Positions 29,375 through 63,925 of a stretch of DNA of 64,000 bases are shown piece after piece. Within the stretch, counting starts at the first letter, position 1, and the number at the start of each line of letters is the position of its first letter. This DNA comes from Rhodosorus marinus CCMP1338. Its lineage: Eukaryota > Plantae > Rhodophyta. A program made the translations under genes and the position numbers. Under the pieces are notes generated by a model. It searched no databases and had not been told where the DNA came from. It worked only from the letters and a program-made list of their open reading frames with translations. The DNA is taken from the NCBI GenBank assembly GCA_029953675.1, contig JAMWBK010000003.1, positions 3,286,001-3,350,000 on the forward strand. Reading direction: 5' to 3'.

Positions 29375-29657
29375 GGTGCCCTCCCATTCTTCGTTCAGAT
29401 CCCTACTAAACCAACTCCGCTTTCGCCTCTCTGAGCACGAGACCAGTGTGAAAGCCGCCATCCATCGCATTGAGCGGATACTTATGGAGCGTTTCGCGTC
29501 GGGTCCACGCCATCTGCGGGCAGCCGCCTCTACCTTTTTCGACCTGGAGGTCGGCCGGTTGACCAGTTTGGTGAGGTTAGGAGGCAAACGCGCGAGGACC
29601 GACTCCCCCGGGTCTAAGGGGGAGAAGCAGGATTAGCTCCCCGGGCACGGCTGCGTT
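29375..29657 (+). mobile_element. Diverged family C ORF1 C-terminal fragment
   Basis: LSEHETSVKAAIHRIERILMERFASGPRHLR..RLGGKRARTDSPG aligns with 36569..37243 product. Confidence 0.8.
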
Positions 29658-29739
29658 GGTTACGTTAGTCTGGGGGTAGGATTAGACGTATTGTTGCGCT
29701 GCAGTAGGCAGCTGCCCAGTAAAGCTTACGGTTACGTTA
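29658..29739 (+). repeat. Telomere-like unit, then a 53-bp family A 3' UTR stub, then a partial unit
   Basis: GGTTACGTTAGTCTGGGGG | TAGGATTAGACG..CAGTAAAGCTTACG | GTTACGTTA. Confidence 0.85.
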
Positions 29740-32700
29740 AGGGAGGCGTTGGGGAAGACAAAAGGAAAAGTTCGTAAGAGAGTCCGAAGATGATTGTGAG
29801 GGAGGTACGCGGGCCGAACCCGAACCTCTTGTCATTCAGGGCCCGGACCCCTCGGGCACCCGGGAAGTTTTGCAAAGGCACCAGCACCAGTCTGATGGCG
29901 ACATGCAGGAGGCACCGACGGAACCACAAGCAGGCGATGTTCAAGCACGAGCGCGGACCGAGTCTGCAGCCGCAACCGACCCGGCAGCCACATTCTTGCA
30001 TCAACTGCGTAGCTTCGACAGATGCTACCAGGACCTGGGCATCGCTGCGTCCGAAATTACAGACTTCTACAAAGCAGTTTTTCAACTGTACTCGCGGGTC
30101 AACAGCTCGCAAGAGCTGCAAGGCGTCACCGGACGCCTTACGGAGTTGTCCCGGAAACCGGATATGTGGGAAGGTAGAGCCGCTACTACGAATTCTGCAC
30201 CATCTCCGCATGATCTCCCACGACAGGCCGTAGGCAACCACCTCGCCCCCGAAACCGGTTACCGTAACGGTTGACTGCCAGGAAGTTATGACGTCCATGA
30301 TTTAGGAACCCGGCTCCCTGCGCCCCAGGGAGGGACAGGTGTCCGGGATCTAGGACACTATGCGGAGGCGTTCCCAGCAATCGGGGAGGGCCCTACAAGG
30401 CCAACCTTCGCCGAGTTTGCAGCTCAGAAAGAACCAGGGAGAGAAGGAGATGCTCGTTCCAGAACTTTTGGACGCCCCGGACCCCAAACCCAGCAGGCTG
30501 CCCTGCGGCAACTGCACGCTACGGTCGGGGGGTCTAGTTGGGGACCCGATGTTGCTCCAGTCCTCGCGACGCTACGGAATGTCCGACCCCCAAGGCTGGA
30601 TGAGGTGGCCCCTGCGGATTTTGCAACGGTTCTTTGCAGAGCACTGGGTATGCCCAGCTCTTATTTGGTGCATGTGGACTTTATTGCCTCCCATGCCTGC
30701 CTGCTGTGCCATCCAGACGCAATTCCGATTCTCCAAAGTGCCATCTCCCGAGGAGTTTTTCTGACTGGGATTTTCGGATCCTTCACACAACGACACGCCG
30801 ATCGACAAGTAAGCCTTTACACTGGCCAGGCGCTGGACCCAGACAACCTTCTGGGTTACCTCGAACGTCAGACCATCGCTCCCGGGGATATCGCTGCCCA
30901 CACGCTGAAGCGGGCCATCGAGCAGCTTGTCCGCATTCGTTCGAGGATCCGCAGGCGACAACTCTCCTTCCACACTCTCGCAGCGCTCTACGAGTTTCTG
31001 GAGGCACGACTAGAGCTCCTAAAAGGCGGACAACATCCGCCTGAGGTACCCGGGGAGTGCGCGGAACCCCCTGGGCCTGCAGCCGCTTCGAACGCAGACC
31101 CTGAAGCCTCGTCCCTTCCAGGGGATGCACAAGCAGACCGTGGGACAGTTGACGCCCAGTTTGAGACTAGCGCGACTTCCCAAGTACCTGAGAACGGAGC
31201 ACACGAGGACAATCCCCATGCGGAGCTCCTCTGCAACCTTCCGGAGCCACCTCAACAGAAGCGCTCGCGAGTATCCGCCGATGGAACCGGACCGGATACT
31301 GAGATGACCTCGGCAGCCGTGGAGACTCCACCGGATACCACTGTGACACAGGTTGCCCTTGACGGCAACCATCACGCGATGGACACGCAGGAGAGCCAGG
31401 AAAACCCAGCGCAATAATGCCGAGCACACGTAGGGGAATTAAACGACGCCGCGACGAGCCTCTGTTCTTCTCGGATCGTCAAGACTGGATCAGGCGGTGG
31501 AGCGTCTTCGTCGACGACGTCACGGAAGGAGGCAGGCAGTGGACGCGCCTTACACACTGCCCGGTTCCCACACGGCGATTTGTGCCACGCGCCCAGGTTC
31601 AAACATGGAGCTGCCTCTTCCGTGCTGCATTAGAGCTCTCTATGGACAGCACCGCACCAACAAAAGCCAGCCTGCTTCTTGTCGGACTTCCAGGCCTTGT
31701 CCTTGGACACTCTGCACTTGATGTTGGCATTCAGGTATCGCATGTGCTTGAAGGAGAATCCTCTACGGTCTGGAGCGCTCTAGAGGACAAGGCGTCTATG
31801 CTGTCGCATACTACCGCACCGCAAGGAGCTGAAGCGGTTCGACGCCAACATCTCGGGCGCCACAAGCGAGCGCTGAAACTAGCACACCTTGGCCGCCTTT
31901 CAGATGCAGCTCGAAGCCTACAGGCCACCGAAATGGCACCTTTTACCGCGGCTACGTGGAGACAACTACAAGCGCTCTTTCCCAACCCGGCGGAAGGTGA
32001 CATACCAGACGAGATTGCACACGCCCTGCAATCTTTGCTCGCTCTGAATACCGAAATACTAAAGCGGCGGTGGGATTCAAGAAAAGCTGCCGACGAGGGC
32101 CTGATGTCGATCGCGGCACGTCTTCCTCAGGGCAAGAGCCCAGGTCCTAGCGGTCTCCGAGCGGAACACCTCCAAGGTGCAACTCAACAGACGCAAGTGG
32201 CGTTGATTCGTGTATTGCGACAACTGGCGACCGCTCCTGAGAAATTTTCCCCGGCTCTGACCCGCGCCCTTCGCAGTAGTCGACTCCTACCGTTCGCGAA
32301 GCCTAACAAGGGTTCAGTGCCACAGGAGCATCCCGGAGTTCGCCCTATCGGAGTACCAGAAGTTTTGCGCAAGGTAGCAACGCAATGGACTCTTCACGCG
32401 GTTATGGACAGGGTGCGTGAGCTCCTGGTGTCCTTACAACTGGGTATTGGAGTAAGTGGCGGGTGCGAACGCTCACTTCACGCGATCCAGGCCCATTTGT
32501 CATGCGAACCCGATTCGGTGGTCCCTCGGCTAGACCTAGAGAATGCCTTTAATCGCATCGACCGACGCCTTGCCAAGCAACTGGTGGACGAACACTTGCC
32601 GGAGCTTGCACCAGTGTATAGACTTGGATATGGAAGCGACAACGCGGACTCACCGACGCTCTGTGGCTGGCGATCTTCCCCTGGACAGAACGAAACCGAC

Positions 32701-33480
32701 ACCTCTCGCCTGACTCTCCAAGCAACTACAGGAGTCCAACAGGGAGATCCACTGGGGCCGGTGCTACATGCACTATCCCTGGCGCCCTTTCTAAGAGCGT
32801 TGCGAGCCAAGCTCCCCAGCGAAACGATTGTTGCTATCCACGACGATATCACGATTGTCGGGCCGCTACAAGCCTTGAAGGCATCCCGGGCATGGGGAAA
32901 AACTGTGCTCCCCTCTCTTGGAGCACGCCTGCAACTCGGCAAGTGCACTGTGTACGGGCGAACACTGACTACCACGCGAGTGGTCAATCATGAGATTCCT
33001 GGAGTGCAAGTGACCAGAGACGGAGTCACCATCCACTCGATACCGATAGGCAGCCGAGAATATATCGAACAGGAGTGCCGGGGGCTGCAAAATAAGCATG
33101 AGAAACTCTTTGAGCAAATTGCCAAGCTCCCACAACCGGAGCTTACGACGCAAATTGCCCTCTTCAGGTTCTGTGCGGAAATGCGGCTAGACTATGTTCT
33201 ACGATGCCTCGCACACGAGTTTGGAAGAACTCTGGCACGCGAGGCCGATGTGATGACCAGATATCATCTGGAAATTCTATTCGGAGGCCTCTCTACGACA
33301 GCTGTAGAGGACGACGAGTACGCAGAGCTGATCTCGGACCAAATCGCTCTGCCCTGCCGCTGGGGGGGGTTGAGTTTCGCTACTCGAAAGCGCGTCCAAC
33401 CCATTGCGTTTTACTCGTCATGGAGAAACACCTTCCGGAACAATGAAGATGAATGGCCATACCTGACTGAACTGGACTTT
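29740..33480 (+). mobile_element. Family A element from its 5' end through RT (ORF1 29870..31417 with frameshift; ORF2 31417..33495), 3' part replaced by an antisense family C copy
   Basis: GKSPGPSGLRAEHL, RPIGVPEVLRK, QLGIGVSGGCE, LDLENAFNRIDR, GVQQGDPLGP, AIHDD, LPCRWGGL. Confidence 0.93.
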
Positions 33481-36400
33481 AGTAGCATAGCCTGAAGCGC
33501 TACGCAAGGCGTGAAGATGAACTAATAACTAGGGAGGGAAGTATGCAACCCCAGGCGCCGATGGCGCGCCTCGGAAAGCATGTCGCTGGAATATCGCCAA
33601 AGGGAGACACTTAAACGCCTCAAGAGCGCCAAATATTCAGTAGGATGCTCAGCAAAACATTTCCGCAACCACTCTAAACCCGACTTATCGACGTGACCAA
33701 AGCTTTCCACAATGAATGGCTGGAACCGGTGAGAGCGACCCTCAGCGCAAGGCAGACTGGCCATGCTCTCAGCATACCGTCGTTCCTTAACTCTTCGAAG
33801 GGCTGAAGCCGCGGCGCCCCGGCGGCGGGCGGCTGCGGTGAGGTGGGCGCTGGCCACGGGGCAGGTAATCGCAAGGTCCACATATGTTGAGCGTCTGGCA
33901 GCAGCGTCGGAGACGAGGAGATCGGCTATACAACGGGGCGGTGCAGAGTCCGAGATTGATCTGGGCAGTTCCGACTCAACCTCAACCGTATGCCCTATCC
34001 GAGTCAAAAATTCGCTGAGGATGTACTTGAGGCGAGTGTGACGCCTCGTACGGAGACCTCTCAACAGTCCGCAGGAACCCAGGAAGTGGTAGCCACAAGC
34101 GTCAATCCGGCTCTCACATCCCTGACAGAAAGACGGCCGATTAGAGTGCCACGGAGCCTGTGGCAAACCGAGATAGATCCGTGCGGCAGAACGGAACTGG
34201 AAAGCATCGAGACGATGACTCAATGACGACGGTAGAGTGGTTAACCACAAGTGCGAGAGGTGGCCTCCCATGCCGCGGAGACGAGCGGCAGTGGTAGGCG
34301 GCGTGAGAGGAGAATTGAGCATGACTGTGTGAGCGGCACTGTGTTGGCCCCAGGTGAGGCTATGTTGAATCACATCAGTGCGGGAGCTCCACAATCGGCT
34401 CAAACCCGGGTAGTCTGCAACAGGTGACCCGGGGCTAGCCTCTCCGTCATCGGCAAGAACTCGGTCCAGGGGACAATCCTCAATCGCTTCAGCTCGTCCC
34501 CATAACAGCTCCCACCAGGAACGAAAGCGGGACCGATTTGCGTCCGGCACGGCGTTGCACTTCCTGAACGCGTGTTGAAGACCATCATAAATTGTCAAAA
34601 GCGGGGGCGGCAGGGTCACTGGATCCTCGTTGGTCAAAGCTCGAGCCAAGAGGCAGGCACTTCGCATCTGGAAGGTCACCAACGTTCGCAGCGCGGTAGC
34701 CCAGGAGGCAACCGCCGCTGGCGAGCATACCAGCCCACGGTCTGCGACGCCGAATCCCCCTAATCGCAACGGTAGAGCGATCTGTGCACGAATTAAGTCC
34801 CTGTCGGGAGCAGCTTCAAGATCGAGGGGCTCATCCAAGAGCGTTCCCCAGTGTTGCAGGGTCATTTCGTCGGCTTTAGCCGCGATCCACGAGCCCCAAG
34901 CTGGAGGCAGGCTGCGCAACCAGTAGTTGAGTCTGGGACCGGCACAAAAGCGGGAAAGCAAGCAGGCCGATTGCAGCATGCTGTCGGGTAGGTGCTCAAT
35001 GGCGTCGGTGAGTTGCTTGTGCCGTGCCAAAACTCGCTCGCAGGATGCTTGGACAAACTTGTCAGTCCCCAATCCGACGCCGTGGTGTTCGAACCCTTCA
35101 CGTTCGCTGATTAGTCGCAGAATGGGTGGCAGAGAGTTCAGCGACACGTCCCTCGGGGGGAGAAAGCGACATTTTTCTGTTTCCAAAGTCAAACCGACGC
35201 GACGTGCAATCGCTTCGATCGCGGTCAGTCCCCTAGCCAGGGTGTCAGGGGTGCCCAGCAATGTTACGTCATCGTGGTACGCGCAGATTCGAAGATCCGA
35301 GACCTCAGTCGAAAGACGTAAAAGTACGAGCTGTAGGGCACAGGCATGAAGAAGAGGTCCGCAAGGGTCGCCTTGTTGGACGCCAGTATGTGCTTGAAAA
35401 ACAGTGCCCTCCGTTGTCAAGTAGGGGAGGCTCTCCCCTCCGTAAATACCCGATAGAAACGGCCACGCCTCCGGAAACACACGTCGGAGCACCTCTAGCG
35501 CATGCGTCCGCGACACGCTGTTGAATGCGTTCCGGAAATCAACCACCAAGACTCCCCAATCCGGCCTACTGGCGCGTTCTAGCTCGATCCCATGGGTGAT
35601 CAGTTCGCAACCCCCAGAAAATCCCACCCCTACTTGCAAGGGCGCCATAAAAGCTGTGACGCGCTGGCGAAGGCGCTGGCATAGCCACCTCCCGGCTAAC
35701 TTCCGTAGGCTCTCCACCATCCCGATCGGCCGGAGACGCGGGTGGGCCGGCTGGTGGTCAGGTTTCGTGAGCAAGCAAAGCTGTGCCTGCCGGAGATGTT
35801 CCCATGGCGCAGACGCACCCGATACGCCCTGGAACAACTTGTTAAGGATCCTCAGAAGCGCGCTCTGGCCAGGCTGGCTCAGGGCCTGCAATAACTCTGT
35901 TCTTAGTCCGGAGGGTCCGGGACAGCGTCCCCGACGCGAGGTACGAAGCAAATCCTCCAGGTCAGACTCACTGAGCGTCAGATCGATGCGAAACCTGGCC
36001 AACTCCGGACGGTCCAAGAATACCTCGAATTCAGGGGACAAATCCACGTCGGACTCAGGGAACAAAGACGACACCGTCTGGGCGAGACTATCATCGTAGG
36101 GGAGGACAGGCGCCTGGCCCTCCAAAACCCGCGCCGCTCGACTTAAATCGCCCACTGCTACCAATTTCTGTACTCGAGCTGGCACGGGCGACACTGTGCC
36201 ATGCCGAGTCCGACAGGCGGATGGTGCTGACGACGCCAAATAGCTGCGCTGTAGTACTTCGAAGTCTCCCTTCAAGAACAGGGCCAGTCGGTCTCGTACT
36301 CGCCATCTGCGCTCCGATGTGTGAATGGGGGCCAGAATCAGGCGCGGCATGACCCCCAGAAAAACCCAAATGACTGTGTCCCGAATGTTGCGAGCCAGGC

Positions 36401-37619
36401 TCGTGAAGATGAAATCGAGAATGGTTCCAGCTACTAGAAGGTCTCCACGAGGAAGGACGACTGGGGGAATGCCCCCACGGAGGGGAAGCGAGCCTCCTTC
36501 CAAAGAAATCCACCGCCGGAGCCAACTCCGAAAACGCGTACGCCAAATGCCCCAGTCTCCGCCCTCCTTCAGGACATAACACTGTAGATCCATAGGCTGC
36601 GACCTCGCAGCCGTGCCTGGAGCGCTAATCGTGCTTCTCCCCTTAGACCCGGGGAGTCGGTCCTCGCTCTCTTACCTCCTATCCGCACCAAAGTCGTGAG
36701 CCGCCCACTCCGCGAGGCTCGCGGAACGGATCCCGCGGGCTTCAGCAAAGTAACCTGGGCGTCCTCCACCGCCATGCCCTCAGTCTGCTCCCCTGCCTCA
36801 CCACTCTCGCTGGAAGTAGTGCTGGAAGCAGAGCCCTCCAAAATCCCCACCCGCTGCAGCTCTGTCTTGTAGCGCGAAGTCAGCACAAGTCGCCTCTCCA
36901 GATCGAAGAAATTGGAAACCGCCATGCGCAGGTGACGAGGGCCCGACCGGAACCGCTCCAACAAGATCCTCTCAAGGCGCTGAATCCGTAGCCAATGGAT
37001 CGCTGCCGCCTTCACGCTGCTCTCATGCTCAGAGAGCCCTGCCGTTTCTCCCGGAGACAGGAAATTGCCCGAGAAACGGTCAAAATCGAAGTGCAAAACC
37101 ACCTGCGGGTTGCAGCGCAGCCACCGGGCGCTCTCAGGCCACTGCTCGGTAGGCTTCGCCAGCAAGGCCTCCAGGTACTTGGCGGCGGTTGCGGAGACCA
37201 AAAAGCACATCGCGGCCCTCATAGTTTGCGAAGAAGAAATCACCCCGGCTGCACCCTAACGATTCCGCAAAAGTGTCCCGGAAGTCTCGCATAGACGGAA
37301 CCTGTCCTCGTGTAGTCTGGGGCCGGACATTTCGCACCCACAGAAATTGGAGAGTGGTCTCCACAGGTCCATCCTGAGGCTCGCGAGATGGTATGAAACG
37401 GAGCATAGCCGCCGTACGTGTGGCAGTGGTGCCCTTCCGCAAGACTGATGCGTACGAAGCGCCCCCCTTGCGGCCACCACGTGCCCCCGAAGTAGCCGGG
37501 AGCTGGTGACCACCTGAGGGCTGGTCCAAGAGAGGGAAGTCCACAGCTGCAGTCTCCTCCACACCGGTTGCCGCACAGTCACCACCACCATTGCCTCGAG
37601 TCCCCGAGCGCTGAAGCGC
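33471..37619 (-). mobile_element. Family C element, ORF2 intact (33522..36593, 1023 aa RT-CCHC-RLE) plus 3' half of ORF1
   Basis: RCPGPSGLRTE, RPIGMVESLRK, VDFRNAFN, GVQQGDPCGP, AYHDD, CQGCESRIDACGYHFLGSC, RHTRL, ADLL..YVDLAI, FQPFIVESFG; 3' end GCTATGCTACTAAAGTCC. Confidence 0.95.
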
Positions 37620-37665
37620 TTCAGGCTATTTCTGGACTTTACTAGCTTTTTTTTTTTTTTTTTTT

Positions 37666-37748
37666 TAGTTCATCTTCACGCCTTGCGTAGCGCTTCAGGC
37701 TATTTATAGCATAGCCTGAAGCGCTACGCAAGGCGTGAAGATGAACTA
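37666..37748. repeat. Perfect 38-bp inverted repeat of family C 3' UTR (tail to tail) next to a poly(T) run
   Basis: TAGTTCATCTTCACGCCTTGCGTAGCGCTTCAGGCTAT (37666-37703) and reverse complement (37711-37748), 7-nt loop. Confidence 0.93.
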
Positions 37749-38344
37749 ATAACTAGGGAGGGAAGTATGCAACCCCAGGCGCCGATGGCGCGCCTCGGAA
37801 AGCATATCCAAACTAGCTCGTCCTCCCTCCCCATCAATGACGCACACACAAGCATGCACCAAGATTTCTCTCGCAAGGACGTCATCTCATATGCCTCCGG
37901 ATAGTTATAAGATGACATGTAGAGATGGAATCATATCCGTGGGAAAAAGGGTCCTCTATAATAACATGCACGGTCAGTACTTCCGGGTACCTTTTTGGGA
38001 GACGCAGCTGGCTCCGGCTAATAGGTACGACCACATAGCCTCACTGTAGAGACTTTTCTATGCGTGGAAAACGTGTTCCAACAGGTAAGTGACCAGTAAT
38101 ACCCGAATACCTGTAATACTGAAAACGAAATCAGTTTCGGGGTTTTGCCTTTCGTGCTTTTCGAATTCGAGAAAACGACGCACTGTAAGGCCCGGCTAAA
38201 GATGGAGTAATCGCCCTATGATGTGCAGCGGCGCTATGGGTTTACCACTCGAAGACAGGTGCGACCGAAAAATAGTGCCCAGAAGTATTGAACCACACGT
38301 ATCGGTATAGGGAAAGCACTCGTATTTTCTGAACAATTGTAGAA

Positions 38345-39003
38345 TGACGCTTGTGGCTACCACTTCCTGGGTTCCTGCGGACTGTTGAGAGGTCTCCGTA
38401 CGAGGCGTCACACTCGCCTCAAGTACATCCTCAGCGAATTTTTGACTCGGATAGGGCATACGGTTGAGGTTGAGTCGGAACTGCCCAGATCAATCTCGGA
38501 CTCTGCACCGCCCCGTTGTATAGCCGATCTCCTCGTCTCCGACGCTGCTGCCAGACGCTCAACATATGTGGACCTTGCGATTACCTGCCCCGTGGCCAGC
38601 GCCCACCTCACCGCAGCCGCCCGCCGCCGGGGCGCCGCGGCTTCAGCCCTTCGAAGAGTTAAGGAACGACGGTATGCTGAGAGCATGGCCAGTCTGCCTT
38701 GCGCTGAGGGTCGCTCTCACCGGTTCCAGCCATTCATTGTGGAAAGCTTTGGTCACGTCGATAAGTCGGGTTTAGAGTGGTTGCGGAAATGTTTTGCTGA
38801 GCATCCTACTGAATATTTGGCGCTCTTGAGGCGTTTAAGTGTCTCCCTTTGGCGATATTCCAGCGACATGCTTTCCGAGGCGCGCCATCGGCGCCTGGGG
38901 TTGCATACTTCCCTCCCTAGTTATTAGTTCATCTTCACGCCTTGCGTAGCGCTTCAGGCTATGCTACTAAAGTCCAGTAAAGTCAAGTAAAGTCCAGTCC
39001 AGT
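38345..39003 (+). mobile_element. Family C 3' fragment (RLE) with slipped tail TAAAGTCCAG-TAAAGTCAAG-TAAAGTCCAG-TCCAG
   Basis: ORF 38385..38927 matches the C-terminal 180 aa of 33522..36593. Confidence 0.92.
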
Positions 39004-39267
39004 TCATGGTTTGGTCTAGATGGAAGACGAGTTGTGACCTAGTCTAAGGTTCTAAATTGGCTCGAATGTAGTTGTAGTTAGGGAGACCACGTAGATGAAA
39101 GCGAAGGGACCCTTGTGAGCATCCGAGCGAGACCTACCAGAGGTTGGCCCGAAAGTACGTTGTGGGGGAAATTTCTGAACAGTTTTTTCCGGGAATAGAC
39201 GGTAATGTCGGTAATAAGTTGCTGGTTGCGTTAAAAATCGGCTCTGCGCTAATATATCTATAGGAAC

Positions 39268-39363
39268 GTGCGCCAACATAGCTGTAGGGGAATCGTGCGC
39301 CAACATAGCTGTAGGGGAATCCTGCGCCAACATATCTGTAGGGGAATCCTGCGACAACATATC
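39268..39363. repeat. 27-bp tandem repeat, about 3.5 copies
   Basis: (G/C)TGCGCCAACATA(G/T)CTGTAGGGGAATC. Confidence 0.9.
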
Positions 39364-39699
39364 GACCCCAAAAGGGTAGCAAGACGCTGAAACCTGCTCC
39401 TAGAGCGGATTCTGGCTCAGTGCTTTGAGATCGAGTGAGGGCTCATCATTAGTTTATTCAGAGCCTGACTACCCTGAGAAGCGAGAGACAAGACGATGAT
39501 GGACGCATGCCTACAAAGCAGCATTTGAGCGTCACAGGGTCAAAGAAAGCTCCGTGAGCAGACTAACTAGGCGCCCTGGGTCGTTGCAAGAGAAAGCACG
39601 GGGTCTGTGGCTAGTCGGGTGAAAGCAGTTTGCTTTGGGTGTGCCTCTCTCGATAGGGTTGTTGAACGGAGCCTCGCTTCATTCCAGGCAAGTCAGCGG

Positions 39700-40870: not shown

Positions 40871-40871
40871 C

Positions 40872-41660: not shown

Positions 41661-41934
41661 AGCAACTAAACCAGTATTCTGCACAACGAGTGTGACCGCT
41701 CTTCCCATCTCTCTTCTCTACAAACACCCGCACCCGTTCCGTCCAATTCCTCCTTACCGACTAACAAAAACTCCTGTCAGCGCCACGCTCAGTAGAAGAC
41801 TTTACCGTAGCTGCCCCTCCACCGCGCCCATTCTCATCCACCTACAAGATCTCCAGCAAAGCGGCCTTAACCTCCACATGGAACAAGATGTCCTCCGAAT
41901 CCATATATAGACGATAGCAACCACCTATGAAATA

Positions 41935-47300: not shown

Positions 47301-47912
47301 CGATTTGTCAGACTGTCAACTGCGGCGACGGACCGGAAATCTGCACTGATCCAGACGGGACACCAAAAGTTGGAGATGTGTGCGTCCTTGAATTCGGTAG
47401 TCTTGGGGTTAGTAAATTTCTGGATGAGCGGACAAAAATTCTTGAGGAATGTGACCCCCCAACTTTTCTCCACGGACTGTCCTTCCAGGTTCTAGAAGCC
47501 TCTTCAGATGTCGCTGGTGAATGTGACTGCGTTGCTCCAACCTGCGTTTACACGTATCAAATAAGGATTGGCCGTAACAGTATTGGGACAGGTTTTGGTA
47601 ATCCCGGCGACGCATGTACTACAAGTGAGGCCCCCGGGGTAGGGAGGAAATTCGCCAAGGTCAAAACTCGTCAGCCTTTCGAAATGTCCTCACCTGCATC
47701 GTACGATTCTTGCCGACCAGGTGGTCAGCGACGAATGCGAGTGCGAGCCGTTGTGCGATGTGGAATGCATTCCAGTAGGTTGTCAGACGAATACCGGTCG
47801 ATGCACAGAGGAAATACCCCCAGTAATTGTCAATGGACAATGTTTGACGAGCTCGGAAGTAGCTGGGGTAAGTGGATGTGTTGTATATGACGATGGGCGA
47901 GGCGGAGTATAA
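44340..47912 (+). CDS. Large secreted Cys-rich repeat protein, about 10 or more exons; N-terminal domain related to that of the RTX-repeat protein
   Basis: Signal-like MLAFRGRRAALVLLPLLVAA; repeated G-x-C-x-C-x3-C modules (GNQCVCEL, GDCTCSD, GTCSCQP, GECGCQV, GSCKCQP, GECDCVA, DECECEP); recurrent GGG|GTAGG donors; stop TAA 47910-47912. Confidence 0.75.
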
Positions 47913-48009
47913 TAGTTCTACCAAATTATTGCTTTCGACCACAGTGCTCTTTTGCTACACACATTGAGAAATTAGGTTTTCTCCGGCTCACGCTCTCGTA
48001 TGTCCGATT

Positions 48010-48990
48010 CATTTGTGCTTTAGACCTACCAGCTTGTATCAGGATCCGGCCAATTCTGCGAGTGCGTTGCATCGCGCTAGTATCCGGAAGACCCACTGCG
48101 AGGATGACGGCGGACGATGGCGCGAGAGTCCAGCACCTCAGAAGGTACAGAGGTAACGATAACGATAAATGTGGCCCCTGTGTTCTACGAAGAAACTGTA
48201 CTAGTTGTTTAGCAATGCGCCGATCGATGCGATCGAACACATTGCGAGGTCCACTCGATAAGCGTGGTCGATTATGGTTCGTCACAGTAACAGTAAAGAA
48301 AAACGGCGCTGGCGCGCTAGCTCTGGGGAAACATCGTTAGCTGTCCACTTTGACTCCGTCTGGAATGCTCTAGAAGCCCACGGGACATAGTAGGTGGCCG
48401 CCGAATACAGGTTACGGGACACAACCGAGGCCGGTTACACCGACTAACCGCACAGCGGTTTAGGGATACAAGCACTCAACAAAAAACCGCGGACGCCCGA
48501 AATAGGCCCTCAAAAGCTCACGCAAAAGGTCGCCTTTTAAGGCTCGTTTTCACCGGTTTCTATCAGAATGGCCTGAAGCGCTACGCAAGGCGTGAAAAAG
48601 GAACTACGACCTAGGGAGGGAAGCGGGCAAACCCAGTCGCCGATGGCGCGCCTCGGCAAGCATGCTGCTAGAATATCGCCACAGGCACAAGTCGACACCA
48701 ATACGTCGTAAGAGTTCGAAGTATTCGGTAGGATGCTCCGCAAAACGTTTCCGCACCCACTCCAAACTCGACTTCTCCACGTGACCAAAGCTCTCCACAA
48801 TGGAGGGCTGGAACCTGTGGGAGCAACCCTCAGCGCATGACAGACTGGTTTTTGAACGAATGAATTGTTTAATCGGAGACTGAAAGAAAAAACGCCGAGG
48901 GGAAAAAAGAAGACTAAGCGCCGCGAAGGTCGCGCGCCTCCAATAGTAACGTGGCGTTCGTGCGCCACATCAAGAAACTCAATCGCGTAA
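48010..48990 (-). mobile_element. Short degenerate fragments: family A-like RT (48010-48340), family C-like 3' end (48560-48830), family D 3' end (48850-48990)
   Basis: FDRIDRRIAKQLV; ESFGHVEKS..RHRRLGLPASLP; family D 3' UTR. Confidence 0.72.
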
Positions 48991-48994
48991 ACAA

Positions 48995-50357
48995 ACAGTA
49001 TCGAGGGCCCGACCGGAACCGCTCCAACAAGATCCTCTCAAGGCGCTGAATCCGTAGCCAATGGATCGCTGCCGCCTTCACGCTGCTCTCATGCTCAGAG
49101 AGCCCTGCCGTTTCTCCCGGAGACAGGAACGGTCAAAATCGAAGTGCAAAACCACCTGCGGGTTGCAGCGCAGCCACCGGGCGCTCTCAGGCCACTGCTC
49201 GGTAGGCTTCGCCAGCAAGGCCTCCAGGTACTTGGCGGCGGTTGCGGAGGCCAAAAACAGCACATCGTTACCCTCATAGTTTGCGAAGAAGAAATCACCC
49301 CGGCTGCACCCTAACGATTCCGCAAAAGTGTCCCGGAAGTCTCGCATAGACGGAACCTGTCCTCGTGTAGTCTGGGGCCGGACATTTCGCACCCACAGAA
49401 ATTGGAGAGTGGTCTCCACAGGTCCATCCTGAGGCTCGCGAGATGGTAGGAAACGAAGCATAGCCGCCGTACGTGTGGCAGTGGTGCCCTTCCGCAAGAC
49501 TGATGCGTACGAAGCGCCCCCCTTGCGGCCACCACGTGCCCCCGCAGTAGCCGAGAGCTGGTGACCACCTGAGGGCTGGTCCAAGAGAGGGAAGTCCACA
49601 GCTGCAGTCTCCTCCACATCGGTTGCCGCACAGTCACCACCACCATTGCCTCGAGTCCCCGAGCGCTGAAGCGCGTTTTGGCCCGGCCTGCCGCTCCCCA
49701 ACGTCGTACTGTCCCGTGCAGAAGCAACCGCACTCGCCTGTCCCGGGACAGGTTCATGTTGATTGACCTGATGTTGACTGCCTTCAGCCAACGTTGCCAC
49801 TCTGGGGCAATTCAAATTCTCGTCCGAATTTGAATTTGACCTGGCCAGCAATCCCGATTCCAGCCCACCTAGCTTCTGGGTGAGCTGAGGTAGCACTCCA
49901 CGATCACTCGCAGCCGTGATCAGGCTGGTGACAGCGGAGATAAGTGCACGCGCCTGGGTGCCAGAAGCGCCTTCCAAGTCAACCTCGGAAGAAAAGGTGC
50001 CGCAGCTGAGGCGAACACGGAGTCCCCCACCTGGCAGTGCCTCCTTGGGAGGAGGCTCCGTCGAGCGCGGAGATATCCCTACCATCCTGAGGGAATGCGC
50101 AAAGTAAACGTTGCACCACCAATATGAAACCGCACCGAGAGAATAATCGACCAAACCCAACCCAAATAGGAAAGGCCCCGCACAACACACCCACCCGGAA
50201 GACAGAAGTAGTTGCAAATGCAAACGACGCCCCGCGGCAAATCGAGGGGAAGGCGTACCAGAGGAAGCGCTTCCCGTAAACGAACACGCTCGCGACCGAA
50301 AAAGAAACAAAACCCCAATCCTCGACAACAACTCACAGCTGACTTGGACCGTTTCTG
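48995..50357 (-). mobile_element. Family C 5' end and most of ORF1 (first ATG 50085); small deletion near 49130
   Basis: 49000-49670 nearly identical to 36945-37619; extends it 5' by about 690 bp. Confidence 0.85.
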
Positions 50358-50870
50358 CTACGCAAGGCGTGAAGATGAACTAATAACTAGGGAGGGAAGC
50401 ATGCAACTCCAGGCGCCGATGGCGCGCCTCGGAAAGCATGTCGCTGGAATATCGCCAAAGGGAGACACTTAAACGACTCAAGAGCGCCAAATATTCAGTA
50501 GGATGCTCAGCAAAACATTTCCGCAACCACTCTAAACCCGACTTATCCACGTGACCAAAGCTTTCCACAATGAATGGCTGGAACCGGTGAGAGCGACCCT
50601 CAGCGCAAGGCAGACTGGCCATGCTCTCAGCATACCGTCGTTCCTTAGCTCTTCGAAGGGCTGAAGCCGCGGCCCCCCGGCGGCGGGCGGCTGCGGTGAA
50701 GTGGGCGCTGGCCACGGGGCAGGTAATCGCAAGGTCCACATATGTTGAGCGTCTGGCAGCAGCGTCGGAGACGAGGAGATCGGCTATACAACGGGGCGGT
50801 GCAGAGTCCGAGATTGATCTGGGCAGTTCCGACTCAACCTCAACCGTATGCCCTATCCGAGTCAAAAATG
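50358..50870 (-). mobile_element. Family C 3' fragment in head-to-tail tandem with the copy at 48995-50357
   Basis: ORF 50380..50865 near-identical to family C RLE region. Confidence 0.9.
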
Positions 50871-50879
50871 TCTCTAGCT

Positions 50880-52959
50880 ACGATAAAAAAGAAAAATAAG
50901 GGATCAGTGGCTGGTCCGACTGATTCACGCGCAAAGCCCTAACGCGAGCTCTGCGTTACCTGCCCAAAGTGTTCTGTTTAGTTGAGCCCGCACGTTGCTC
51001 AACTCGTACACGGAATCAGTTTGTCATCTGGATGCTCTGTCACCATCGCCTCCTTATAGTGTGCAAGTTTCCAACGCTCCGCCTGTTTTGCTGCATAACC
51101 ATTGTTGTCTTTGCTGTTGGGTAGGTGTCTCGCCTGTAGGGGTGACATCACCGTCACATCGATCGCAAATTGTTGCCATGTTCTAGGGTGTATAGCTACC
51201 AAATCAGGTTGTAGATTCGAGTTCGTGAAGTAGCCTGTAGGTTCTTGCTGAACATCTCTGAACTGCCATCTGTTAAGCCAACGCGCCAGCTCAGTGCAGA
51301 GCTCACACCAGACTAACGTAACCTCCGCCAACTCGTCTGGTAAGTCAGCTGCCGCAGGTTCTGGGAAGAGTCCTCAGAGTTGGCTCCAGGTAGCCTCGGC
51401 GAAGGGAGCCATTTCCGTTCCCTGTAGTCGACGAGCAGCATCCGAGAGGCGAACGAGATGTCCCAGTTTCAGGGCTTGTTTCTGGCGTCCTAAAGCTTGG
51501 CGGCGAGTCGCTTCGGTTCCCGGTGGAGCAGTACTCTGCTGCAGTGGGGACGTCCTGTCTTCAAGCGCGGTCCAGACCGTATGGAATTCTCGCTCGAGCA
51601 CATGTGTGACCTGAAGACCAATGTCACGAGTACAACGTCCTAGCACTAGGCCTGGAAGTCCGACAAGAAGCAGAGTGGCGTTGGCAGATGCAGCGGTGTC
51701 CATGGAGATCTCAAGAGCTGCACGAAGAAGGCGGCTCCAGGTATTGACGAGGGCACAAAGCGCCGTGTGGGTACCGGCAGTGTGTTAGGCACGTCCAATG
51801 CCTGCCTCCTGTCGTAACTTGGTCAACGAAGTCGGTCCACCGTTTGATCCAGGCTTGACGCTCCGAGAAGAACAGAGGCTCGTCGCGTCTTCGTTTGATT
51901 CCCCTTTGTCGGCTGGGCATTATTGCGTGGGTGGTGTCAGTGTGGTCGGCCTGTGGTCCAGTGTTGCCCTGTGGAGCCTCTACGGCTGCCGGAGTCATCT
52001 CGGTATCCTGGCCTGTGCCATCAGTGGATACTCGCGACCGCTTGTGTTGAGGAGGCTCGGGAAGGTTGCAGAGGAGCTTTGCGTGAGGGTTATCCTCGGG
52101 TGCAGCTTCTTCAGGTACTTGGGAAGTCGCTAAGGGATTACCCGGAGCGTCGACTGTCCCACGGGCTGCCTGTGCGTCTCACGTGAGGGACGAGGCTTCA
52201 GGGTCTGCGTTCGTGGCGGCTGCAGGTGCTGGGGGTTCCTCGCTCTCCCCGGGTACCGTTGGAGTACGTTGTGTGGCTTGTAGGGCTCCGAGTCTGCTCT
52301 CCAGGTACTCGTGTATCGCTGCGAGAGTGTTGAACGAGAGTTGCCTTCTGCGAAGCCTCGCGCGGATCCGGATAGTCTGTTCAATGTCCCTTTTCAGGGT
52401 CTGGGCCCCGACGTTCGCTGGGGCAATGAGCTGACGTTCATTATAGCCCAACAGGTTGTCTGTATCCAGTGCCTGGCCCGTGTAGAGAGTCACTTGCCGA
52501 TCGGGGTGTCTCTTGGTGAACGATCCGAAGATCCCCGTCCTGAAAACGCCCCGAGAGATGGCGCTTTGTAGAATCGGAATCGCGTCCGGATGGCAAAGTC
52601 CAGTCCAGAGTAAGCACGCATTGGAAACGATGAAGTCCACGTGCGCCACATAAGAGCTCGGAATCCCCAAGGCTTTGCAAAGAACCGTGGTGAAGTCCGA
52701 TGGGGCTACCTCGTCCAACCGTGGCGATCTTACGTTCCTCAGGGTCACCAGTACCGGCGTGGTCTCAGGTCCCCAGGAGGACCCTCCCTCTGTGGCGTGC
52801 AGCTGCCGCAGCGCTGCCTGCTGGCTCTGTGGGCCTGGGCGTCCTGCTGGTCGGATTTGAGCCTCTGATTCTCGAGCTGGAGTATTTTGGACAGTGCGCT
52901 TAGCGTACGTTGGCCGTGTGCTGCTGGTCCCGGCAACAGGGAAGGCCGTGGCATAGTCC
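50880..52959 (-). mobile_element. Family A fragments: ORF1 and start of ORF2 with deletions (51324-52959), telomere-like unit (51308-51323), then 5'-truncated RLE fragment (50880-51307)
   Basis: LRNVRSPRLDEVAPSDF, MPSRQRGIKRRRDEPLFF, LQPDLVAIHPRTWQQFAIDVTVMSP; CCAGACTAACGTAACC at the junction. Confidence 0.87.
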
Positions 52960-53178
52960 TGTTAGAACTTGCCCTGACAGCTGTGTAAACTATGTAAGAC
53001 ACTCCCTACTTTAGTGTAAGATCCCTACTTTAGTGTAAGACGCTAGTGTGCTAGTATTTCTACTTTACTGTCTGGCACGTCTTAGTTTACAGATACCAAG
53101 ACTATATAAGACCTAGCATTGCTAGATCTTGAGACCTAGAATGGAGTAAAGGACAAGTTGGTTAGAAGAGTTCTAACA
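52960..53178 (+). repeat. 5' LTR, 219 bp
   Basis: TG..CA ends with 10-bp terminal inverted repeat; TATATAA at 53103; internal 18-bp duplication CCCTACTTTAGTGTAAGA. Confidence 0.92.
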
Positions 53179-53267
53179 GTGGTCTCATCGCTCAAAGGTT
53201 TAAGAGGATACGAACGGAGGGAGGGGCGATCTAGCGGAAGCAGGAGGACTCGAGTAGCCAACTTCAA

Positions 53268-53960
53268 ATGACTACGTTTACCATACCCCCGCCCGAGGCT
53301 TACGACGGCAAGCGGGATTTCGTCAAAATTCAGACGTTCGTAGCCTCACTGCGTGGCTACCTGAACTTCCATCACGCAGCAGACTCCGGCCGCCAGTCAG
53401 TCCAGTACGCGGGGCTGTTTTTGAGAGCCCAGGCCCAGGTCTGGTACCAGGGTCTTCGACAAGCGGCGGATGGCATCCCGGAGGCACTGGACTCCCTCGA
53501 AGACTTCGAACAGGCCCTGCGAGGACAGTTCGAGCCTCACGACCATATCGAGCGAGTCCGGGCCAAACTGCGCAGCGCTCGACAACGCGGCCCTGATGTC
53601 ACCCGTTACGTCGACTATCTGGATGAACTTTTCATGCAATTGGGCGAGTTCATCAGCGACTCTGAAAAGCTGGAGCGCTTTAAGGCGGGCTTGACTGGTC
53701 GTGAGCGAGACTTCGTCTATTATGGTCGACCCAAGACCTATGAAGAAGCGAAAGCCATCGCATTGAGCCTGGCGGGTGCCCACGAGATGCCGAAGGAAGC
53801 GACGAAGGGATCCTCGGATCCACCAAGAAGCAAACCCCGCACAACGTCACCGCGCCGGCCCCACACGCGCAGCATGGGGTCACCGCCAACCTGCTACCAG
53901 TGTCAAGAGGTAGGACACTTTAAACAAGACTGCCCCCGGCGACTGGCGTATTTGCAGTGA
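53268..53960 (+). CDS. gag: Gag (retrotransposon capsid plus CCHC zinc knuckle)
   Basis: PEAYDG, AQVWY, LRSARQ..VTRY, RFKAGL, CYQCQEVGHFKQDC. Confidence 0.9.
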   Translation: MTTFTIPPPEAYDGKRDFVKIQTFVASLRGYLNFHHAADSGRQSVQYAGLFLRAQAQVWYQGLRQAADGIPEALDSLEDFEQALRGQFEPHDHIERVRAKLRSARQRGPDVTRYVDYLDELFMQLGEFISDSEKLERFKAGLTGRERDFVYYGRPKTYEEAKAIALSLAGAHEMPKEATKGSSDPPRSKPRTTSPRRPHTRSMGSPPTCYQCQEVGHFKQDCPRRLAYLQ

Positions 53961-54014
53961 GGTGACACGCTTATCGAGCCTACAGCAGGAAAACTAACGG
54001 ACTCCGGACGAGGG

Positions 54015-57000
54015 ATGCCGTCCGAGAGTCCAACGACCAGCATCCCAACCGTTGGGTTACAGCAACGGGGTAATGCAGGCCTAACTGCAATAGGCGTGGT
54101 AGCGGCGGAACCGGTGGAATGTCTCATCGACACCGGTGCGGTGACGGCAATTAGAGAGGACGTTGCGAAAGCCGCCAACCTACCGAGGTACGACGAGCCA
54201 CGGACATACGGGTTGGCTGTCGGTGAGGAGACCGTGATCAGCCCCGGAGTGACGGAGACAACGATCACACTCCAGGGACGACAATTCAAGACGAAGCTAC
54301 GAATATTCAAGCATCTAAGCCACGATGTATACTTAGGTCTCGATTTCTTGAGGCAACATCGAATAACTGTCGATTGTAGCGCGGAACCCCCACAGCTGGT
54401 ACTGGGAGCGGAAGACACCAGCATGCGGGGAATAACAAGTATGGAGACGGAGGAAGAAATAGGGGAGAGGTCTGGCGCGGTCATCCGGGAAGGGAAAGGC
54501 CTAGAGAAAGGCGGAAAGGACCAGGTTGCTGACCCAGGAGAGAAGTTTGGTGCCGTCATCCGGAAAGAGTTTCCCCAAGTTTTCCAAGATACACTGCCGT
54601 TGCCACCGAAGAACCGGCAATTATATGCACTCAAAATCGAATTGGAACCATGGGCGAGTACACCAGCTCAACGCGCATATTCGATGTCACGGGTCGACCG
54701 AGAGCGGCTACAAGGAGAGTTGCACGACTTGGAAGAGCAAGGATTTATCTCACGGAGCAGAAGTCCGTATGCTGCACCTGTGTTGTACGTGGACAAAAAG
54801 GACGGTGGGCGACGCCTCTGCATCGACTATCGCCGGTTGAACCAGATCACCGTGCGAGAAAGAACGACCCCGCCTAGAGTGGAGGAACTATTGGATACCC
54901 TGAGCACGCGCGGGTTTTCACAACGTTAGACCTCCGCTCGGGATATTGGCAGTTGCCAATTGAACAGGCATCACGCGAGAAGACGGCCTTTGTCACGTGC
55001 TTCGGACAATACCAGTGGAATGTCATGCCGTTTGGGTTGAAGAATGCGCCCTCGGCATTCATCCGCTACTTGACGGATGTATTATATGATCTTCTCAACC
55101 AGTGCGTGGTGTTATACGTTGACGACATTCTGGTATATTCCCCAGATGACACACAACACCAGGCCGATGTTCGAAAGGTGCTACGACGCCTCGAGCAGCA
55201 TCAGCTGATCGTCAAATATTCGAAGTGCGGTTTTGGATTACGCCAAGTTTGCTACCTAGGCCAAATCTTGGCGGGAGGCACTCGACGTCCCGATCCGGAA
55301 AAGGTCAAAGCAGTTCAGAATTGGAAGACGCCAACGACGGTTAAGGAGCTACGGGCCTTCATGGGTTTCGCGAACTTCTTGCGCCCCTTTGTACCACACT
55401 TTGCCCAGGTGGCGGCGCCCCTCCACAGGCTAACGAAGAAAGACCAAAAGTGGGGTTGGCAAGCGAACGAACAACAAGCCTTTGATGGGTTAAAGTCCGC
55501 CATATCAGCAACCACCATGCTGTACATGGTTGATCCGATCCTCCCCTTCATCGTGCAGACGGACGCAAGCGACACCGGGGTGGGTGCTGTCCTATTCCAG
55601 ACCCGCCAGGATCGGGAGGTGCCCGTGGCGTATATGTCCCGATCCTTCAATAGCACCGAGAAACGCTACAGTACGTACGAGAAAGAACTCTACGCTATCG
55701 TCCTGGCCATCCGCGGGTGGTCCGTGTATCTTGATGGGCAACAGTTCACTGTGCGTACGGACCATAACCCGCTACGCTTCTTGCAAACACAGACGACATT
55801 AACTCGTCGGCAGGCGCGGTACGTGAACATATTACTACCCTACTCCTTTGAGGTTCAATGCGTACGCGGCAAGATAAACGTCGCGGATGCACTGAGTCGC
55901 GACGCACTACGAGCCAACCGCGTCACGATGGAAGCCGATTGGACTCCAGAGTACCAAGCTGATCCAGAATTCTGCACGCAATTTCGCAGCCCGGACCAGT
56001 TTGAGGGTTTCCAACGAAAAAAGGGTCTATTATTCCTCCATGCACGACTTTGCGTACCCGAACGCCGTGTTAATGAGGTCATCGATGGGCACCACCAGTC
56101 CCTAACGTCAGGCCATTTTGGCGCACAAGCTACTTACCGTGTGGTGCGACGACGCTATTACTGGCCCAGCATGAGGAAGGACATCTTCACGCGCGTCCAG
56201 CAATGCTCGGTTTGTGCACGAGAACAACCGCTGCGTCGGCATCAAGGGGAACTACAACCCCTCCCGATACCGGAACAGCGGGCCTCTGATTGGTCGGTGG
56301 ATTTCATCACTGCATTTCCCAACGTCGAGGGCTATGATGCCATTCTGGTGGTCGTTGACCGGCTTACGAAGTATGCCGTGTTCATCCCCACAACGAAGAC
56401 GGTGACTGCAGAAGAGGTGGCAGCGCTAATCGTGAAGAATATTATCACGTGGTTCGGACTACCACGAAGCTTCGTCACTGATCGTGATAAGGTCTTTACC
56501 GCCACATTCTGGCGCCACCTAATGCGAATAATGGGGATTGACCACCTACTTTCGACGGCATATCACCCTGAAACGGATGGGCAAACAGAACGCGTCAATC
56601 AGACCCTCCAGATCATGCTGAGATGCTGTTGTACGAGCCACACTTGGGTACAGAGTTTACCCCTGCTTCAACTGGCGTATAATAATCATACTTCAGCGAG
56701 TACCGGGTATTCACCATATTTCTTGTTAACAGGAGGGCACCCGCGGCTCAATTTGGACACCTCAACCCCTACTACTACGATTCATAATCTGGCCGATGCT
56801 GTTACTGCCTTTTCGCAACGTCAAGAACGAATCCTCGCTGACGCACGGAAATCTATGGCCCTGGCGCAAAAGTTATACACGGAACAAGCAAATTCACGAC
56901 GTCATGCCAAAATCTTCAATATCGGAGACAACGTTTATTTGTCAACGCGGAATCTCTCACTGGAGGGCCCAACCCGCTTCCAACCTCGATGGTTGGGCCC

Positions 57001-57367
57001 GTTTCCCGTGATCGAGAAACACTCTGATGTGGCATACACTCTGCAATTACCGGATGAAATGCGGATACATCCGACATTTCACGTTTCCTTGCTAAAAGGT
57101 GCCCCTACGTGTCCTCCGAATTCTCCGATACGGAGTATCCCTCTCCAATCGGATCTCTATTCAACGTTACCGATCCTGTCGGTATTGGGAGTCCGCCATG
57201 CGGCTACCGGTGTCCGACAGTTCCTATGTTATCGCGAAAACGAATCCTACTCTGATGCGACTTGGATAACCGAGCCGGACTACCCCACCGATCTACAATC
57301 TCGACGACGCTTACGACACTACCTCAATTATCGCAAGGCGCTTGACGCGCTACCTTCAACTTCTTGA
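54015..57367 (+). CDS. pol: Pol: protease, RT, RNase H, integrase with GPY/F and degenerate chromodomain; 1-bp frameshift near 54905
   Basis: LIDTGA; SPYAAPVLYVDKKDG, RLCIDYRRLN, MPFGLKNAP, YVDDIL; TDASD, EKELYA, TDHNPL; HHCC, VDFIT, TDRD, TERVN; WLGPF, HPTFHVSLLK; QFLCYRENESYSDATW. Confidence 0.93.
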
Positions 57368-57411
57368 GTTTGTCCCCAAACTCGGCGGGAGGAATGTTAG
57401 AACTTGCCCTG

Positions 57412-58067
57412 ACATCAGCCCCCTTGGCCGTACGAGATGGGTTCGTCGTGCCCTCTCTGCTCTCAGACTGAAGACAACGCAGATTTTGGCGCCCACCTGC
57501 TCGCTAGTTGCCCGGCGGTGAAAGGTGCTCGAACCCGCCGCCACACACGGATCTTGAACCTGTTATACCGGGAACTTCGGCCTATAGTCCGGCAAGCCGG
57601 TCTGGAAATCGAACGTGAGAAACCTTTACCCGTCGCGGACTTTCAAAATGATGAACGCCGTGTAGCCGACCTGGTGATCACCTGTGACGACAGCCGCCGT
57701 ACCACATACGTTGATCTTGCTGTTCCTAACCCTCAAGCTAGTCGTTATCTCCCGGCTGCGGGGGAGCGCCGTGGATCTGCCGCCGCCAGCATGAGACGCC
57801 GCAAAGAGATCAAATACGCGGGGGCTTTGTCTTCCCCTGGTGTTCGTGCTTCGGCACTAGCACATCGCTTGGTACCCCTGATCATTGAGTGCTTTGGGTT
57901 CATGGACTCTGTTGGTTCTCGCTGGCTTCGGGAGTTGTTCCGCGAACGCCCTGACCGTCTTCAATTGTTGTTTACCCGCTTAAGTTTCCTGCTGTGGCGC
58001 ATGAATGCCGCTTTGATGTTGGAGGCGCGAGTACTTCGCCGCGCTTAGTCTTTTTTTCCCCTCGGGG
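57412..58067 (+). mobile_element. Family D 5'-truncated copy joined to the broken 3' LTR; its own 3' UTR is cut short
   Basis: ORF 57437..58048 nearly identical to the C-terminus of 22612..23541; UTR stops at CCCCTCGGGG whereas other D copies continue TTTTGTTTCAGCCTCCGATTAAACC. Confidence 0.92.
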
Positions 58068-58102
58068 TTTACGTTAGTCTGGGGTTACGTTAGTCTGGGG
58101 GT
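58064..58102 (+). repeat. Telomere-like tandem repeat (GGGGTTACGTTAGTCT)n, about 2.3 units
   Basis: GGGGTTTACGTTAGTCT GGGGTTACGTTAGTCT GGGGGT. Confidence 0.9.
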
Positions 58103-63911: not shown

Positions 63912-63925
63912 GGTTACGTTAGTCT

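Follow-up and report, generated by a model that had tools for sequence, protein, structure and literature searches.

Retrotransposons that live at chromosome ends have been described in a range of hosts, and they are the natural reference for the locus examined here, a 64,000-nucleotide stretch of contig JAMWBK010000003.1 (hereafter the window) in which a G-rich 16-nt repeat is joined at three places to truncated retroelements. In Bombyx mori, SART1 and TRAS1 are telomere-repeat-specific elements of the non-LTR (non-long-terminal-repeat) class which nick inside the repeat array, insert in opposite orientations, and have an apurinic/apyrimidinic (AP)-type endonuclease and poly(A) tails. The Genie/GilM and GilT elements of Giardia lamblia have a restriction-like endonuclease, form head-to-tail subtelomeric arrays and show telomere repeats (TAGGG) on truncated copies. 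HeT-A and TART of Drosophila and the Penelope-like Athena elements extend or cap chromosome ends, with truncated copies alternating with end addition; their 3' end is set on the terminal 3'-OH and their antisense strand is continuous with the G-rich strand, Athena being devoid of an endonuclease and Drosophila of telomerase repeats. The MoTeR reverse transcriptase (RT) belongs to the restriction-like-endonuclease group. MoTeR1 and MoTeR2 are non-LTR elements of the telomeres of Magnaporthe oryzae, where they insert only into the telomere repeat, in one orientation, and build head-to-tail arrays (PMC7367193); the FoTeRs of Fusarium oxysporum are related to them (PMC7367193, PMC12857005). MoTeRs take part in a cycle of breakage, de novo telomere formation and retrotransposition, 17 of 23 truncated elements and 19 of 24 rDNA truncations showing seeds of 1-7 nt (PMC7367193). 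Chromosome healing by telomerase, at short, G/T-rich seeds and with distal loss, is described from ciliates, Plasmodium, yeasts and the rDNA end of Magnaporthe, where the 19 seeded events of 24 used 1-4 nt (PMC7367193). The healing/retrotransposon cycle itself is already known, in fungi and in other organisms.

From about 12.8 kb to its end, the window consists of more than 51 kb of nested retroelement fragments (self-BLAST and tblastn map), in which four non-LTR families, A, B, C and D, can be told apart. The repeat unit of this island, delimited by Tandem Repeats Finder (TRF), is GGGGTTACGTTAGTCT; a search for TTACGTTAGTCTGG with at most 2 mismatches returned 13 matches (11 of them on the + strand) against 0.26 expected, and none of 100 shuffles reached 13. 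An earlier note, made from the letters of the window alone, had proposed that this repeat was appended to broken ends at short GG(TT) seeds, as in telomere healing, and that breaks, telomerase action and retrotransposition succeeded one another. All three junctions read as it claimed: the repeat is joined to truncated upstream sequence, and behind every repeat tract lies a 5'-truncated retroelement of the A/B type (3 of 3). Downstream of the junctions the window did not yield the lost parts. The reading that we favour, with our own belief and doubt about equally balanced, is a terminal truncation followed by de novo addition of the repeat and then by targeted retrotransposition. The first junction (J1, at 58064) and the array to its right comprise the following features.

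52960 to 57414, + strand: Ty3/gypsy LTR element; 3' LTR reduced to its first 20 nt (57395-57414), cut by the insertion of D
57416 to 58070, + strand: family D non-LTR element, 5'-truncated, the last ~35 nt of its 3' untranslated region (UTR) missing
58064 to 58101, + strand: repeat tract of J1, made of GGGGTT (58064-58069, common to D and the unit), an additional T, ACGTTAGTCT, one full unit and GGGGG
58102 to 58613, + strand: 5'-truncated family B copy with endonuclease part, 3' UTR and one repeat unit, 96% identical to 62984-63495
58614 to 58659, + strand: degenerate or variant units, TCATTGAGGGTTTGTTAGTCTGGGG and TTGACGTTAGTCTGGGG, preceding the full-length B
58660 to 63493, + strand: full-length family B; open reading frame 1 (ORF1) at 58641-60113 (ORF list), ORF2 at 60244-62922; ends ...CAGTAAAGTGTACGCGG TTACGTTAGTCT
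63494 to 63555, + strand: A/B 3'-end mini-copy and units, namely the 16-nt GCCCAATAAAGCTCAC, then GGTTACGTTAGTCT, GGGGTTAGTCT (11-nt variant) and GGGGTTACGTTAGTCTGGGG
63556 to 63925, + strand: A-like 3' UTR, 5'-truncated, ending ...CCCAATAAAGCTCACGG TTACGTTAGTCT; the next element adjoins

The D copy at J1, 99.4% identical to the copy at 22590-23251, can be followed to ...CCCCTCGGGGTTT (58064-58070); then come ACGTTAGTCT, GGGGTTACGTTAGTCT and GGGGG (to 58101), and the B fragment begins at 58102. The five intact D copies continue GGGGTTTT(T)nCTTTCAGCCTCCGATTAAACCATTCRTTC (from the breakpoint region, CCCCTCGGGGTTTT(T)nCTTTCAGCC..., ~35 nt more than in the J1 copy), and the J1 copy is thus truncated about 35 nt short, at GGGGTT(T). 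Checked on these five copies, D and the unit overlap by 6 nt (GGGGTT), plus one additional T that is irregular under every model; by our arithmetic, a 6-nt overlap at a random joint has a probability of ~2x10^-4. On the other side, the 20 nt at 57395-57414 are the start of the gypsy 5' LTR at 52960, D having inserted after nt 20 of the 3' LTR, and neither the D tail (TGTTTCAGCCTCCGATTAAACC...) nor the remaining gypsy LTR was found further right within the window. The B fragment starts at a point that corresponds to 62984 of the full-length B, and the intact copy has no repeat upstream of 62984. The simplest order of events at J1 would then be insertion of the gypsy element, insertion of D into its LTR, distal loss within the D UTR, addition of the repeat and insertions of B. 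The full-length B, the sole such copy in the window, has a broken ORF2, with stops in two frames just ahead of the endonuclease part. An 11-nt antisense match to the unit (ACGTAACCCCA, 62917-62927) lies exactly where this ORF2 breaks.

The second junction (J2, 51323 to 51308) is read on the minus strand.

51324 to 52959, - strand: family A element from ORF1 amino acid (aa) ~164 to ORF2 aa ~207; 3' part missing, 5' side cut by the gypsy 5' LTR
51308 to 51323, - strand: single unit, GGTTACGTTAGTCTGG, between two A-type fragments
50880 to 51307, - strand: A-like fragment, 5'-truncated, with the ORF2 endonuclease region and part of the 3' UTR; a 5'-truncated C copy adjoins directly

Here the ORF2 of A stops at ...ADLPDELAE, followed by GGTTACGTTAGTCTGG and by TGTGAGC... 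(CELCTELARWLNRW...IDVTV), coding for the endonuclease portion (ARWLNRW...IDVTV) of a second A-like ORF2; the rest of the first ORF2 was not found downstream in the window. A tblastn extension that made J2 a plain read-through of the A ORF2 proved spurious, the downstream sequence being the endonuclease region ~600 aa further along. The junction lies within a block (48565-52959) that is inverted relative to the other arrays and holds, on the minus strand, an A 5' part, one unit, an A-like 3' part, a C 3' part, C ORF1, a D 3' end and a C 3' end; the gypsy 5' LTR begins exactly at its edge (52960).

The third junction (J3, at 29658) is again on the + strand.

29427 to 29657, + strand: C-like fragment from the end of ORF1 to the start of ORF2, truncated on both sides, 83% identical to C
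29658 to 29676, + strand: repeat tract of J3, GGTTACGTTAGTCTGGGGG
29677 to 29739, + strand: last 62 nt of an A element, ...CCCAGTAAAGCTTACGG TTACGTTA
29740 to 33463, + strand: family A with intact 5' end, ORF1 and ORF2 to aa ~690; 3' part cut by a full-length C in the opposite orientation

The C-like fragment ends GCTGCG-TTGG and passes into TTACGTTAGTCTGGGGG, where C at the equivalent point reads GCTGCG-AGGTCGC, and its ORF2 continuation was not found downstream in the window. On the short GG(TT) seeds of the earlier note the junctions differ: at J1 the 6-nt GGGGTT is present, one additional T being needed, whereas at J2 and J3 a GG does precede TTACG but cannot be proven to be a seed, because the intact relatives (A, just 74% identical at J2; the nearest C, 83% at J3) are too diverged and differ at exactly these bases. 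A GG seed at J2 is plausible.

The three tracts have a register and a polarity in common. Each begins within the G-run of the unit (4 of 16 phases), which by our arithmetic would happen by chance at three junctions in about 1 case in 64. At all three junctions the G-rich strand runs 5' to 3' away from the retained DNA, and de novo addition to a truncated end explains both this outward polarity and the common register. Nor does the repeat belong to the 5' ends of the elements that follow: these begin internally (at B position 62984, in an A-like endonuclease region and in the terminal 62 nt of A), at starts upstream of which intact copies have no repeat.

Pfam RVT_1 was matched in ORF2 of A, B and C; the best solved structures (PDB) are R2 proteins for C, with R2 and LINE-1 ORF2 reported for the RT, and the database relatives, weak at 25-33% identity, are dinoflagellate RTs, unnamed RTs and RTs annotated SLACS. 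Looked up for an exact match, the C ORF of the window had no database record. When the C-termini of A-like, B, C and D are aligned, a conserved CxxC..C, RRH, (P/A)D, D[VL]x[VI], K..Y emerges, also described as CxxC..HxxC, RH, PD..D..K, which we call a zinc knuckle and a PD..D..K endonuclease at motif level; no profile of the domain gave a score. Judged by these sequence features, A and B are R2-like non-LTR elements, with an RT, a C-terminal zinc knuckle and an R2-type restriction-like endonuclease. Their intact 3' ends adjoin the repeat in 8 of 8 cases, reading ...(A/G)TAAAG(C/T)..AC(G)G and then TTACGTTAGTCT or part of it, against 0 of 6 for D and 0 of 7 for C: the flanks of the six intact D ends (...GATTAAACCATTCRTTC) and of the seven C ends (...GCTACTAAAGTCCAG...) are unrelated. 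This difference in 3' flanks makes A and B repeat-specific, and C and D not. The A/B sense strand is the G-rich strand in every copy, two inverted copies included. New A/B copies begin directly after GTCT, GTTA, GG or GGGG(G) of the previous unit, vary in size between full length and the 16 nt of the mini-copy at 63494, and stand head-to-tail at 14384-16157, 29677-33463 and 58102-64000, with frequent 5' truncation and 0.5 to 3 units between elements. Endonuclease-dependent target-primed reverse transcription, starting at a C-strand nick that we predict to lie in the CCCC run, agrees with this anatomy; attachment to a terminal 3'-OH does not.

A few observations bear on the RNA and the layout of these elements. 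An AGTAAA or AATAAA resembling a polyadenylation signal stands ~9-11 nt ahead of the GG|TTACG joint in every A/B 3' end (14590-14625, 29710-29739, 58580-58613, 63465-63525 and 63895-63925; 3190-3232 in the sister-strain transcript L005). This transcript ends in AAAA 18 nt past CACGG, the genomic A/B copies being without poly(A); from the position of the signal and from this AAAA end, A/B RNA probably ends inside the repeat-like tail. L005 and a second sister-lineage transcript, L001, carry a common 3' UTR motif (...CCCAATAAAGCTCAC, ...AGTAAAGCGTTCACGG) and diverge past it (AGTCTCCCCC..., TTAGAAGTTTCACAAAA), so they are uninformative on the unit. Immediately ahead of each of the two A copies whose 5' end is intact stands a 5'-truncated A 3' end, of 388 nt in one case (14624-15071) and of 62 nt in the other (29677-29790), a tandem arrangement that recalls HeT-A, in which the 3' end of the upstream element supplies the promoter. 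Two segments first taken as a separate family, "E" (49002-50331 and 36936-37619), are the ORF1 region of family C; they are 96.5% identical to each other, and a 417-aa ORF overlaps C ORF1.

Set beside the described systems, the A/B arrays are closest in form to MoTeRs and FoTeRs, with short interstitial repeat tracts, internalised relics and unstable ends, a likeness of structure. The MoTeR 5' end, however, faces the chromosome end and 5'-truncated copies are capped, whereas here the sense strand is the G-rich strand and it is the 3'-truncated elements that are capped; moreover the unit is 16 nt long, not TTAGGG, and the host is a red alga. The orientation of A and B is that of SART1, from which, as from TRAS1, they differ by their C-terminal restriction-like endonuclease and by genomic copies without poly(A). 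Compared by general description, Genie, GilM and GilT have the same type of endonuclease and form of array, with another repeat and another host. The orientation of HeT-A, TART and Athena is not seen in any copy, A/B sense being the G-rich strand throughout, and A and B carry the restriction-like endonuclease motifs that Athena lacks. As in chromosome healing, the repeat stands on non-telomeric DNA and the distal sequence is lost; the difference is that the events are deduced from fossils later buried by retrotransposons.

We thus propose that each junction may be the fossil of a former chromosome end. At J1, breakage or erosion would have cost D its final 35 nt together with the gypsy LTR beyond nt 20; at J2 the greater part of an A ORF2 would have gone, and at J3 almost the whole of a C-like element. 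A G-rich 3' end, GGGGTT in the case of J1, would next have received the repeat de novo, telomerase being the most probable enzyme. Finally, A/B copies would have entered the short tract so formed by target-primed reverse transcription, started at a C-strand nick, thereby internalising it. Since A and B end in one copy of the unit, insert only into the unit and are sense on the G-rich strand, repeated insertions would give head-to-tail arrays. The structural part of the cycle proposed in the earlier note is borne out by the truncations, the polarity and the structure of the following elements; its enzyme, probably telomerase, and its setting at a chromosome end are deduced from these.

Several points weigh against this account. 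The D element could be interrupted and not broken, because the array to the right of J1 runs out of the window; a seed can be verified at 1 of 3 junctions, and there with the additional T; and the terminal location of the unit is something that we infer. A literature search with all rotations of the motif on both strands found no publication that gives it, a 22-nt probe spanning two units had 0 matches in metagenome and transcriptome contigs, and no telomerase RNA was found in the window. At the left border of the island an inverted A-like 3' end meets unique DNA via only GGTTAGT (7 nt of repeat). Finally, the repeat is absent from many of the island's other truncated joints, and other scrambling processes must therefore act in it as well.

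Could the repeat have reached the truncated ends ready-made? A broken end in D, in A or in the C-like element may have been joined to a fragment of a repeat and A/B array by microhomology-mediated end joining, or extended by break-induced replication, the repeat and the elements behind it being copied or ligated as a block from another chromosome end or from the sister chromatid, without telomerase. The 6-nt GGGGTT overlap at J1 suits microhomology-mediated repair equally well, the island has fold-back palindromes and the inverted block that carries J2, and MoTeRs provide documented cases both of internalised telomeric relics made by non-homologous end joining and of break-induced replication from one array to another (PMC7367193). 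We nevertheless hold such a capture to be unlikely: joining in random register does not predict that all three tracts begin in the G-run, the additional T at J1 is left unexplained, and the window contains no high-identity second copy of the junction-distal material, the B fragment being just 96% identical to the full-length B. It is also conceivable, if improbable, that the 16-mer is a private target or 3' tail of A and B, used at look-alike sites (GGGGTT, GG) where the upstream elements are interrupted, the island perhaps being internal, for example pericentromeric. In the window the unit is indeed seen only beside A/B ends, an A-like end does meet unique DNA via GGTTAGT, host intergenic DNA does contain a 13-nt match to the unit, and literature and contig collections gave no external proof that the unit is terminal. 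Insertion at look-alike sites, however, would not create the two units between D and the 5'-truncated B, nor does it sit well with free tandem units and 11- and 17-nt variants unattached to element bodies, with the failure to find the remainders of all three elements downstream in the window, or with a TTAG...GGGG composition that is typical of telomere repeats.

No break at all would be needed if the A/B endonuclease nicked the C-rich strand of a repeat tract already present and the ...AACC 3' end so produced annealed to GG or GGGGUU inside D, A or C-like RNA and primed 3'-truncated copies. The GG|TTACG register common to truncated and natural ends, and the fact that all three truncated elements are sense on the G-rich strand, would be accounted for, and very short target-primed products do occur, e.g. 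the 16-nt mini-copy at 63494. Yet the 5' sides of D (nt 20 of the gypsy LTR) and of the C-like fragment (unrelated sequence) adjoin non-repeat DNA, so that internal priming still requires a prior repeat on a truncated non-telomeric end, and the register of J1, with its additional T, mismatches the nick position implied by the natural ends; we consider this explanation quite improbable. An assembly artefact, in which chimeric reads were joined at a short common repeat, is hardly credible even in so repetitive a region, given that a common tract of 16-32 nt lies well below the length at which long-read assembly would go astray and that the three junctions are different, each internally coherent, with the overlap at J1 falling at a specific position of D.

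The unit, GGGGTTACGTTAGTCT, is most likely a telomeric repeat. Free tandem units vary in length, from the 11-nt GGGGTTAGTCT to 17-nt units with an additional T or G, with runs of 4-5 G, and this variation resembles telomerase stutter. Red-algal telomere motifs are mostly missing, unknown or fragmentary in the literature (PMC7046594). The R. marinus genome paper mentions assembled telomeres without printing the motif, which is also absent from its supplements. In the metagenome and transcriptome contigs, a locus search started from P0001, the closest relative, brought no confirmation, and an Rfam scan of the window at the gathering threshold returned no RNA family. A 13-nt antisense match to the unit (CCAGACTAACGTA, ~0.03 chance matches expected) lies at 3523-3535 in the intergenic DNA between a sirtuin-like gene and SDHB. 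As a telomerase RNA template it was rejected: it falls short of a full unit, the GGGGTTACG part could not be copied from it, and it is unconserved in R. marinus transcripts. It may have been left behind by an A-type 3' end (GCCGCCCAG...TACGTTAGTCTGG). A further internal match of 12 nt (GGGGTTACGTTA, 26499-26510, - strand) falls in the ORF of one family D copy and could be a seed or a look-alike target.

If the unit is telomeric, A and B would be, as far as the literature was searched, the first telomere-targeted retrotransposons described in red algae, and a 16-nt unit would rank among the longest telomere units outside yeasts. The healed junctions would be a natural record of where repeat synthesis starts, their register, GG|TTACGTTAGTCTGG, yielding a prediction for the template of the telomerase RNA. 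With an orientation opposite to that of MoTeRs, erosion would eat into the 3' ends of the elements, which should affect how the arrays buffer chromosome ends. It is tempting to speculate, though we give the idea little credence, that Rhodosorus ends are a composite, actively cycling system in which the unusually long 16-nt repeat alternates with endonuclease-bearing retrotransposons of G-strand sense, the 3' tail of whose RNA (GGUUACGUUAGUCU) corresponds to a single round of repeat synthesis; in the boldest version the repeat would be templated by the retrotransposon tail, or the template of the telomerase RNA derived from it, and the system would be a living link between end maintenance by retrotransposons and end maintenance by telomerase.

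Two further sites lie near the left edge of the island.

12813 to 14612, no strand assigned: border between unique DNA and island, with an A-like element on the minus strand, then a fold-back palindrome
14384 to 15011, + strand: two tandem 5'-truncated A 3' ends, each closed by repeat (14610-14625 and 14997-15010); a full-length A from 15012

Fold-backs are products of broken or uncapped ends. In the border palindrome, which lies within A-like sequence, the inner arms (13752-14052 and 14084-14380) are 95-100% complementary around a 31-nt spacer and the outer arms 83% complementary, the spacer region overlapping a 19-nt tandem duplication (TRF 14049-14085). A second palindrome (37662-37752), in a C 3' UTR beside a run of 20 A, has 42-nt arms that are 98% complementary and a 7-nt spacer. 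Together with the inverted block, the two fold-backs point to a history of end instability, and they support the view that the island is, or was, subterminal.

The left ~12.8 kb of the window is occupied by ordinary intron-bearing genes, among them a sirtuin-like ORF and an SDHB ORF. The latter (3964-4644) is 95% identical to Rhodosorus marinus SDHB (MMETSP), the next matches being at ~40%, and R. marinus MMETSP transcripts match the window at 84-89% identity at the DNA level, the MMETSP strain being a sister strain. By these matches the window is nuclear DNA of a Rhodosorus-like red alga other than the MMETSP strain. Within the transposon island itself, an intact 459-aa ORF with a signal-peptide-like start (17584-18963) contains six matches to RTX/hemolysin-type calcium-binding repeats (Pfam HemolysinCabind, E=1e-33). 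Proteins of this type are unusual for red algae, and this one might have been acquired from bacteria by gene transfer.

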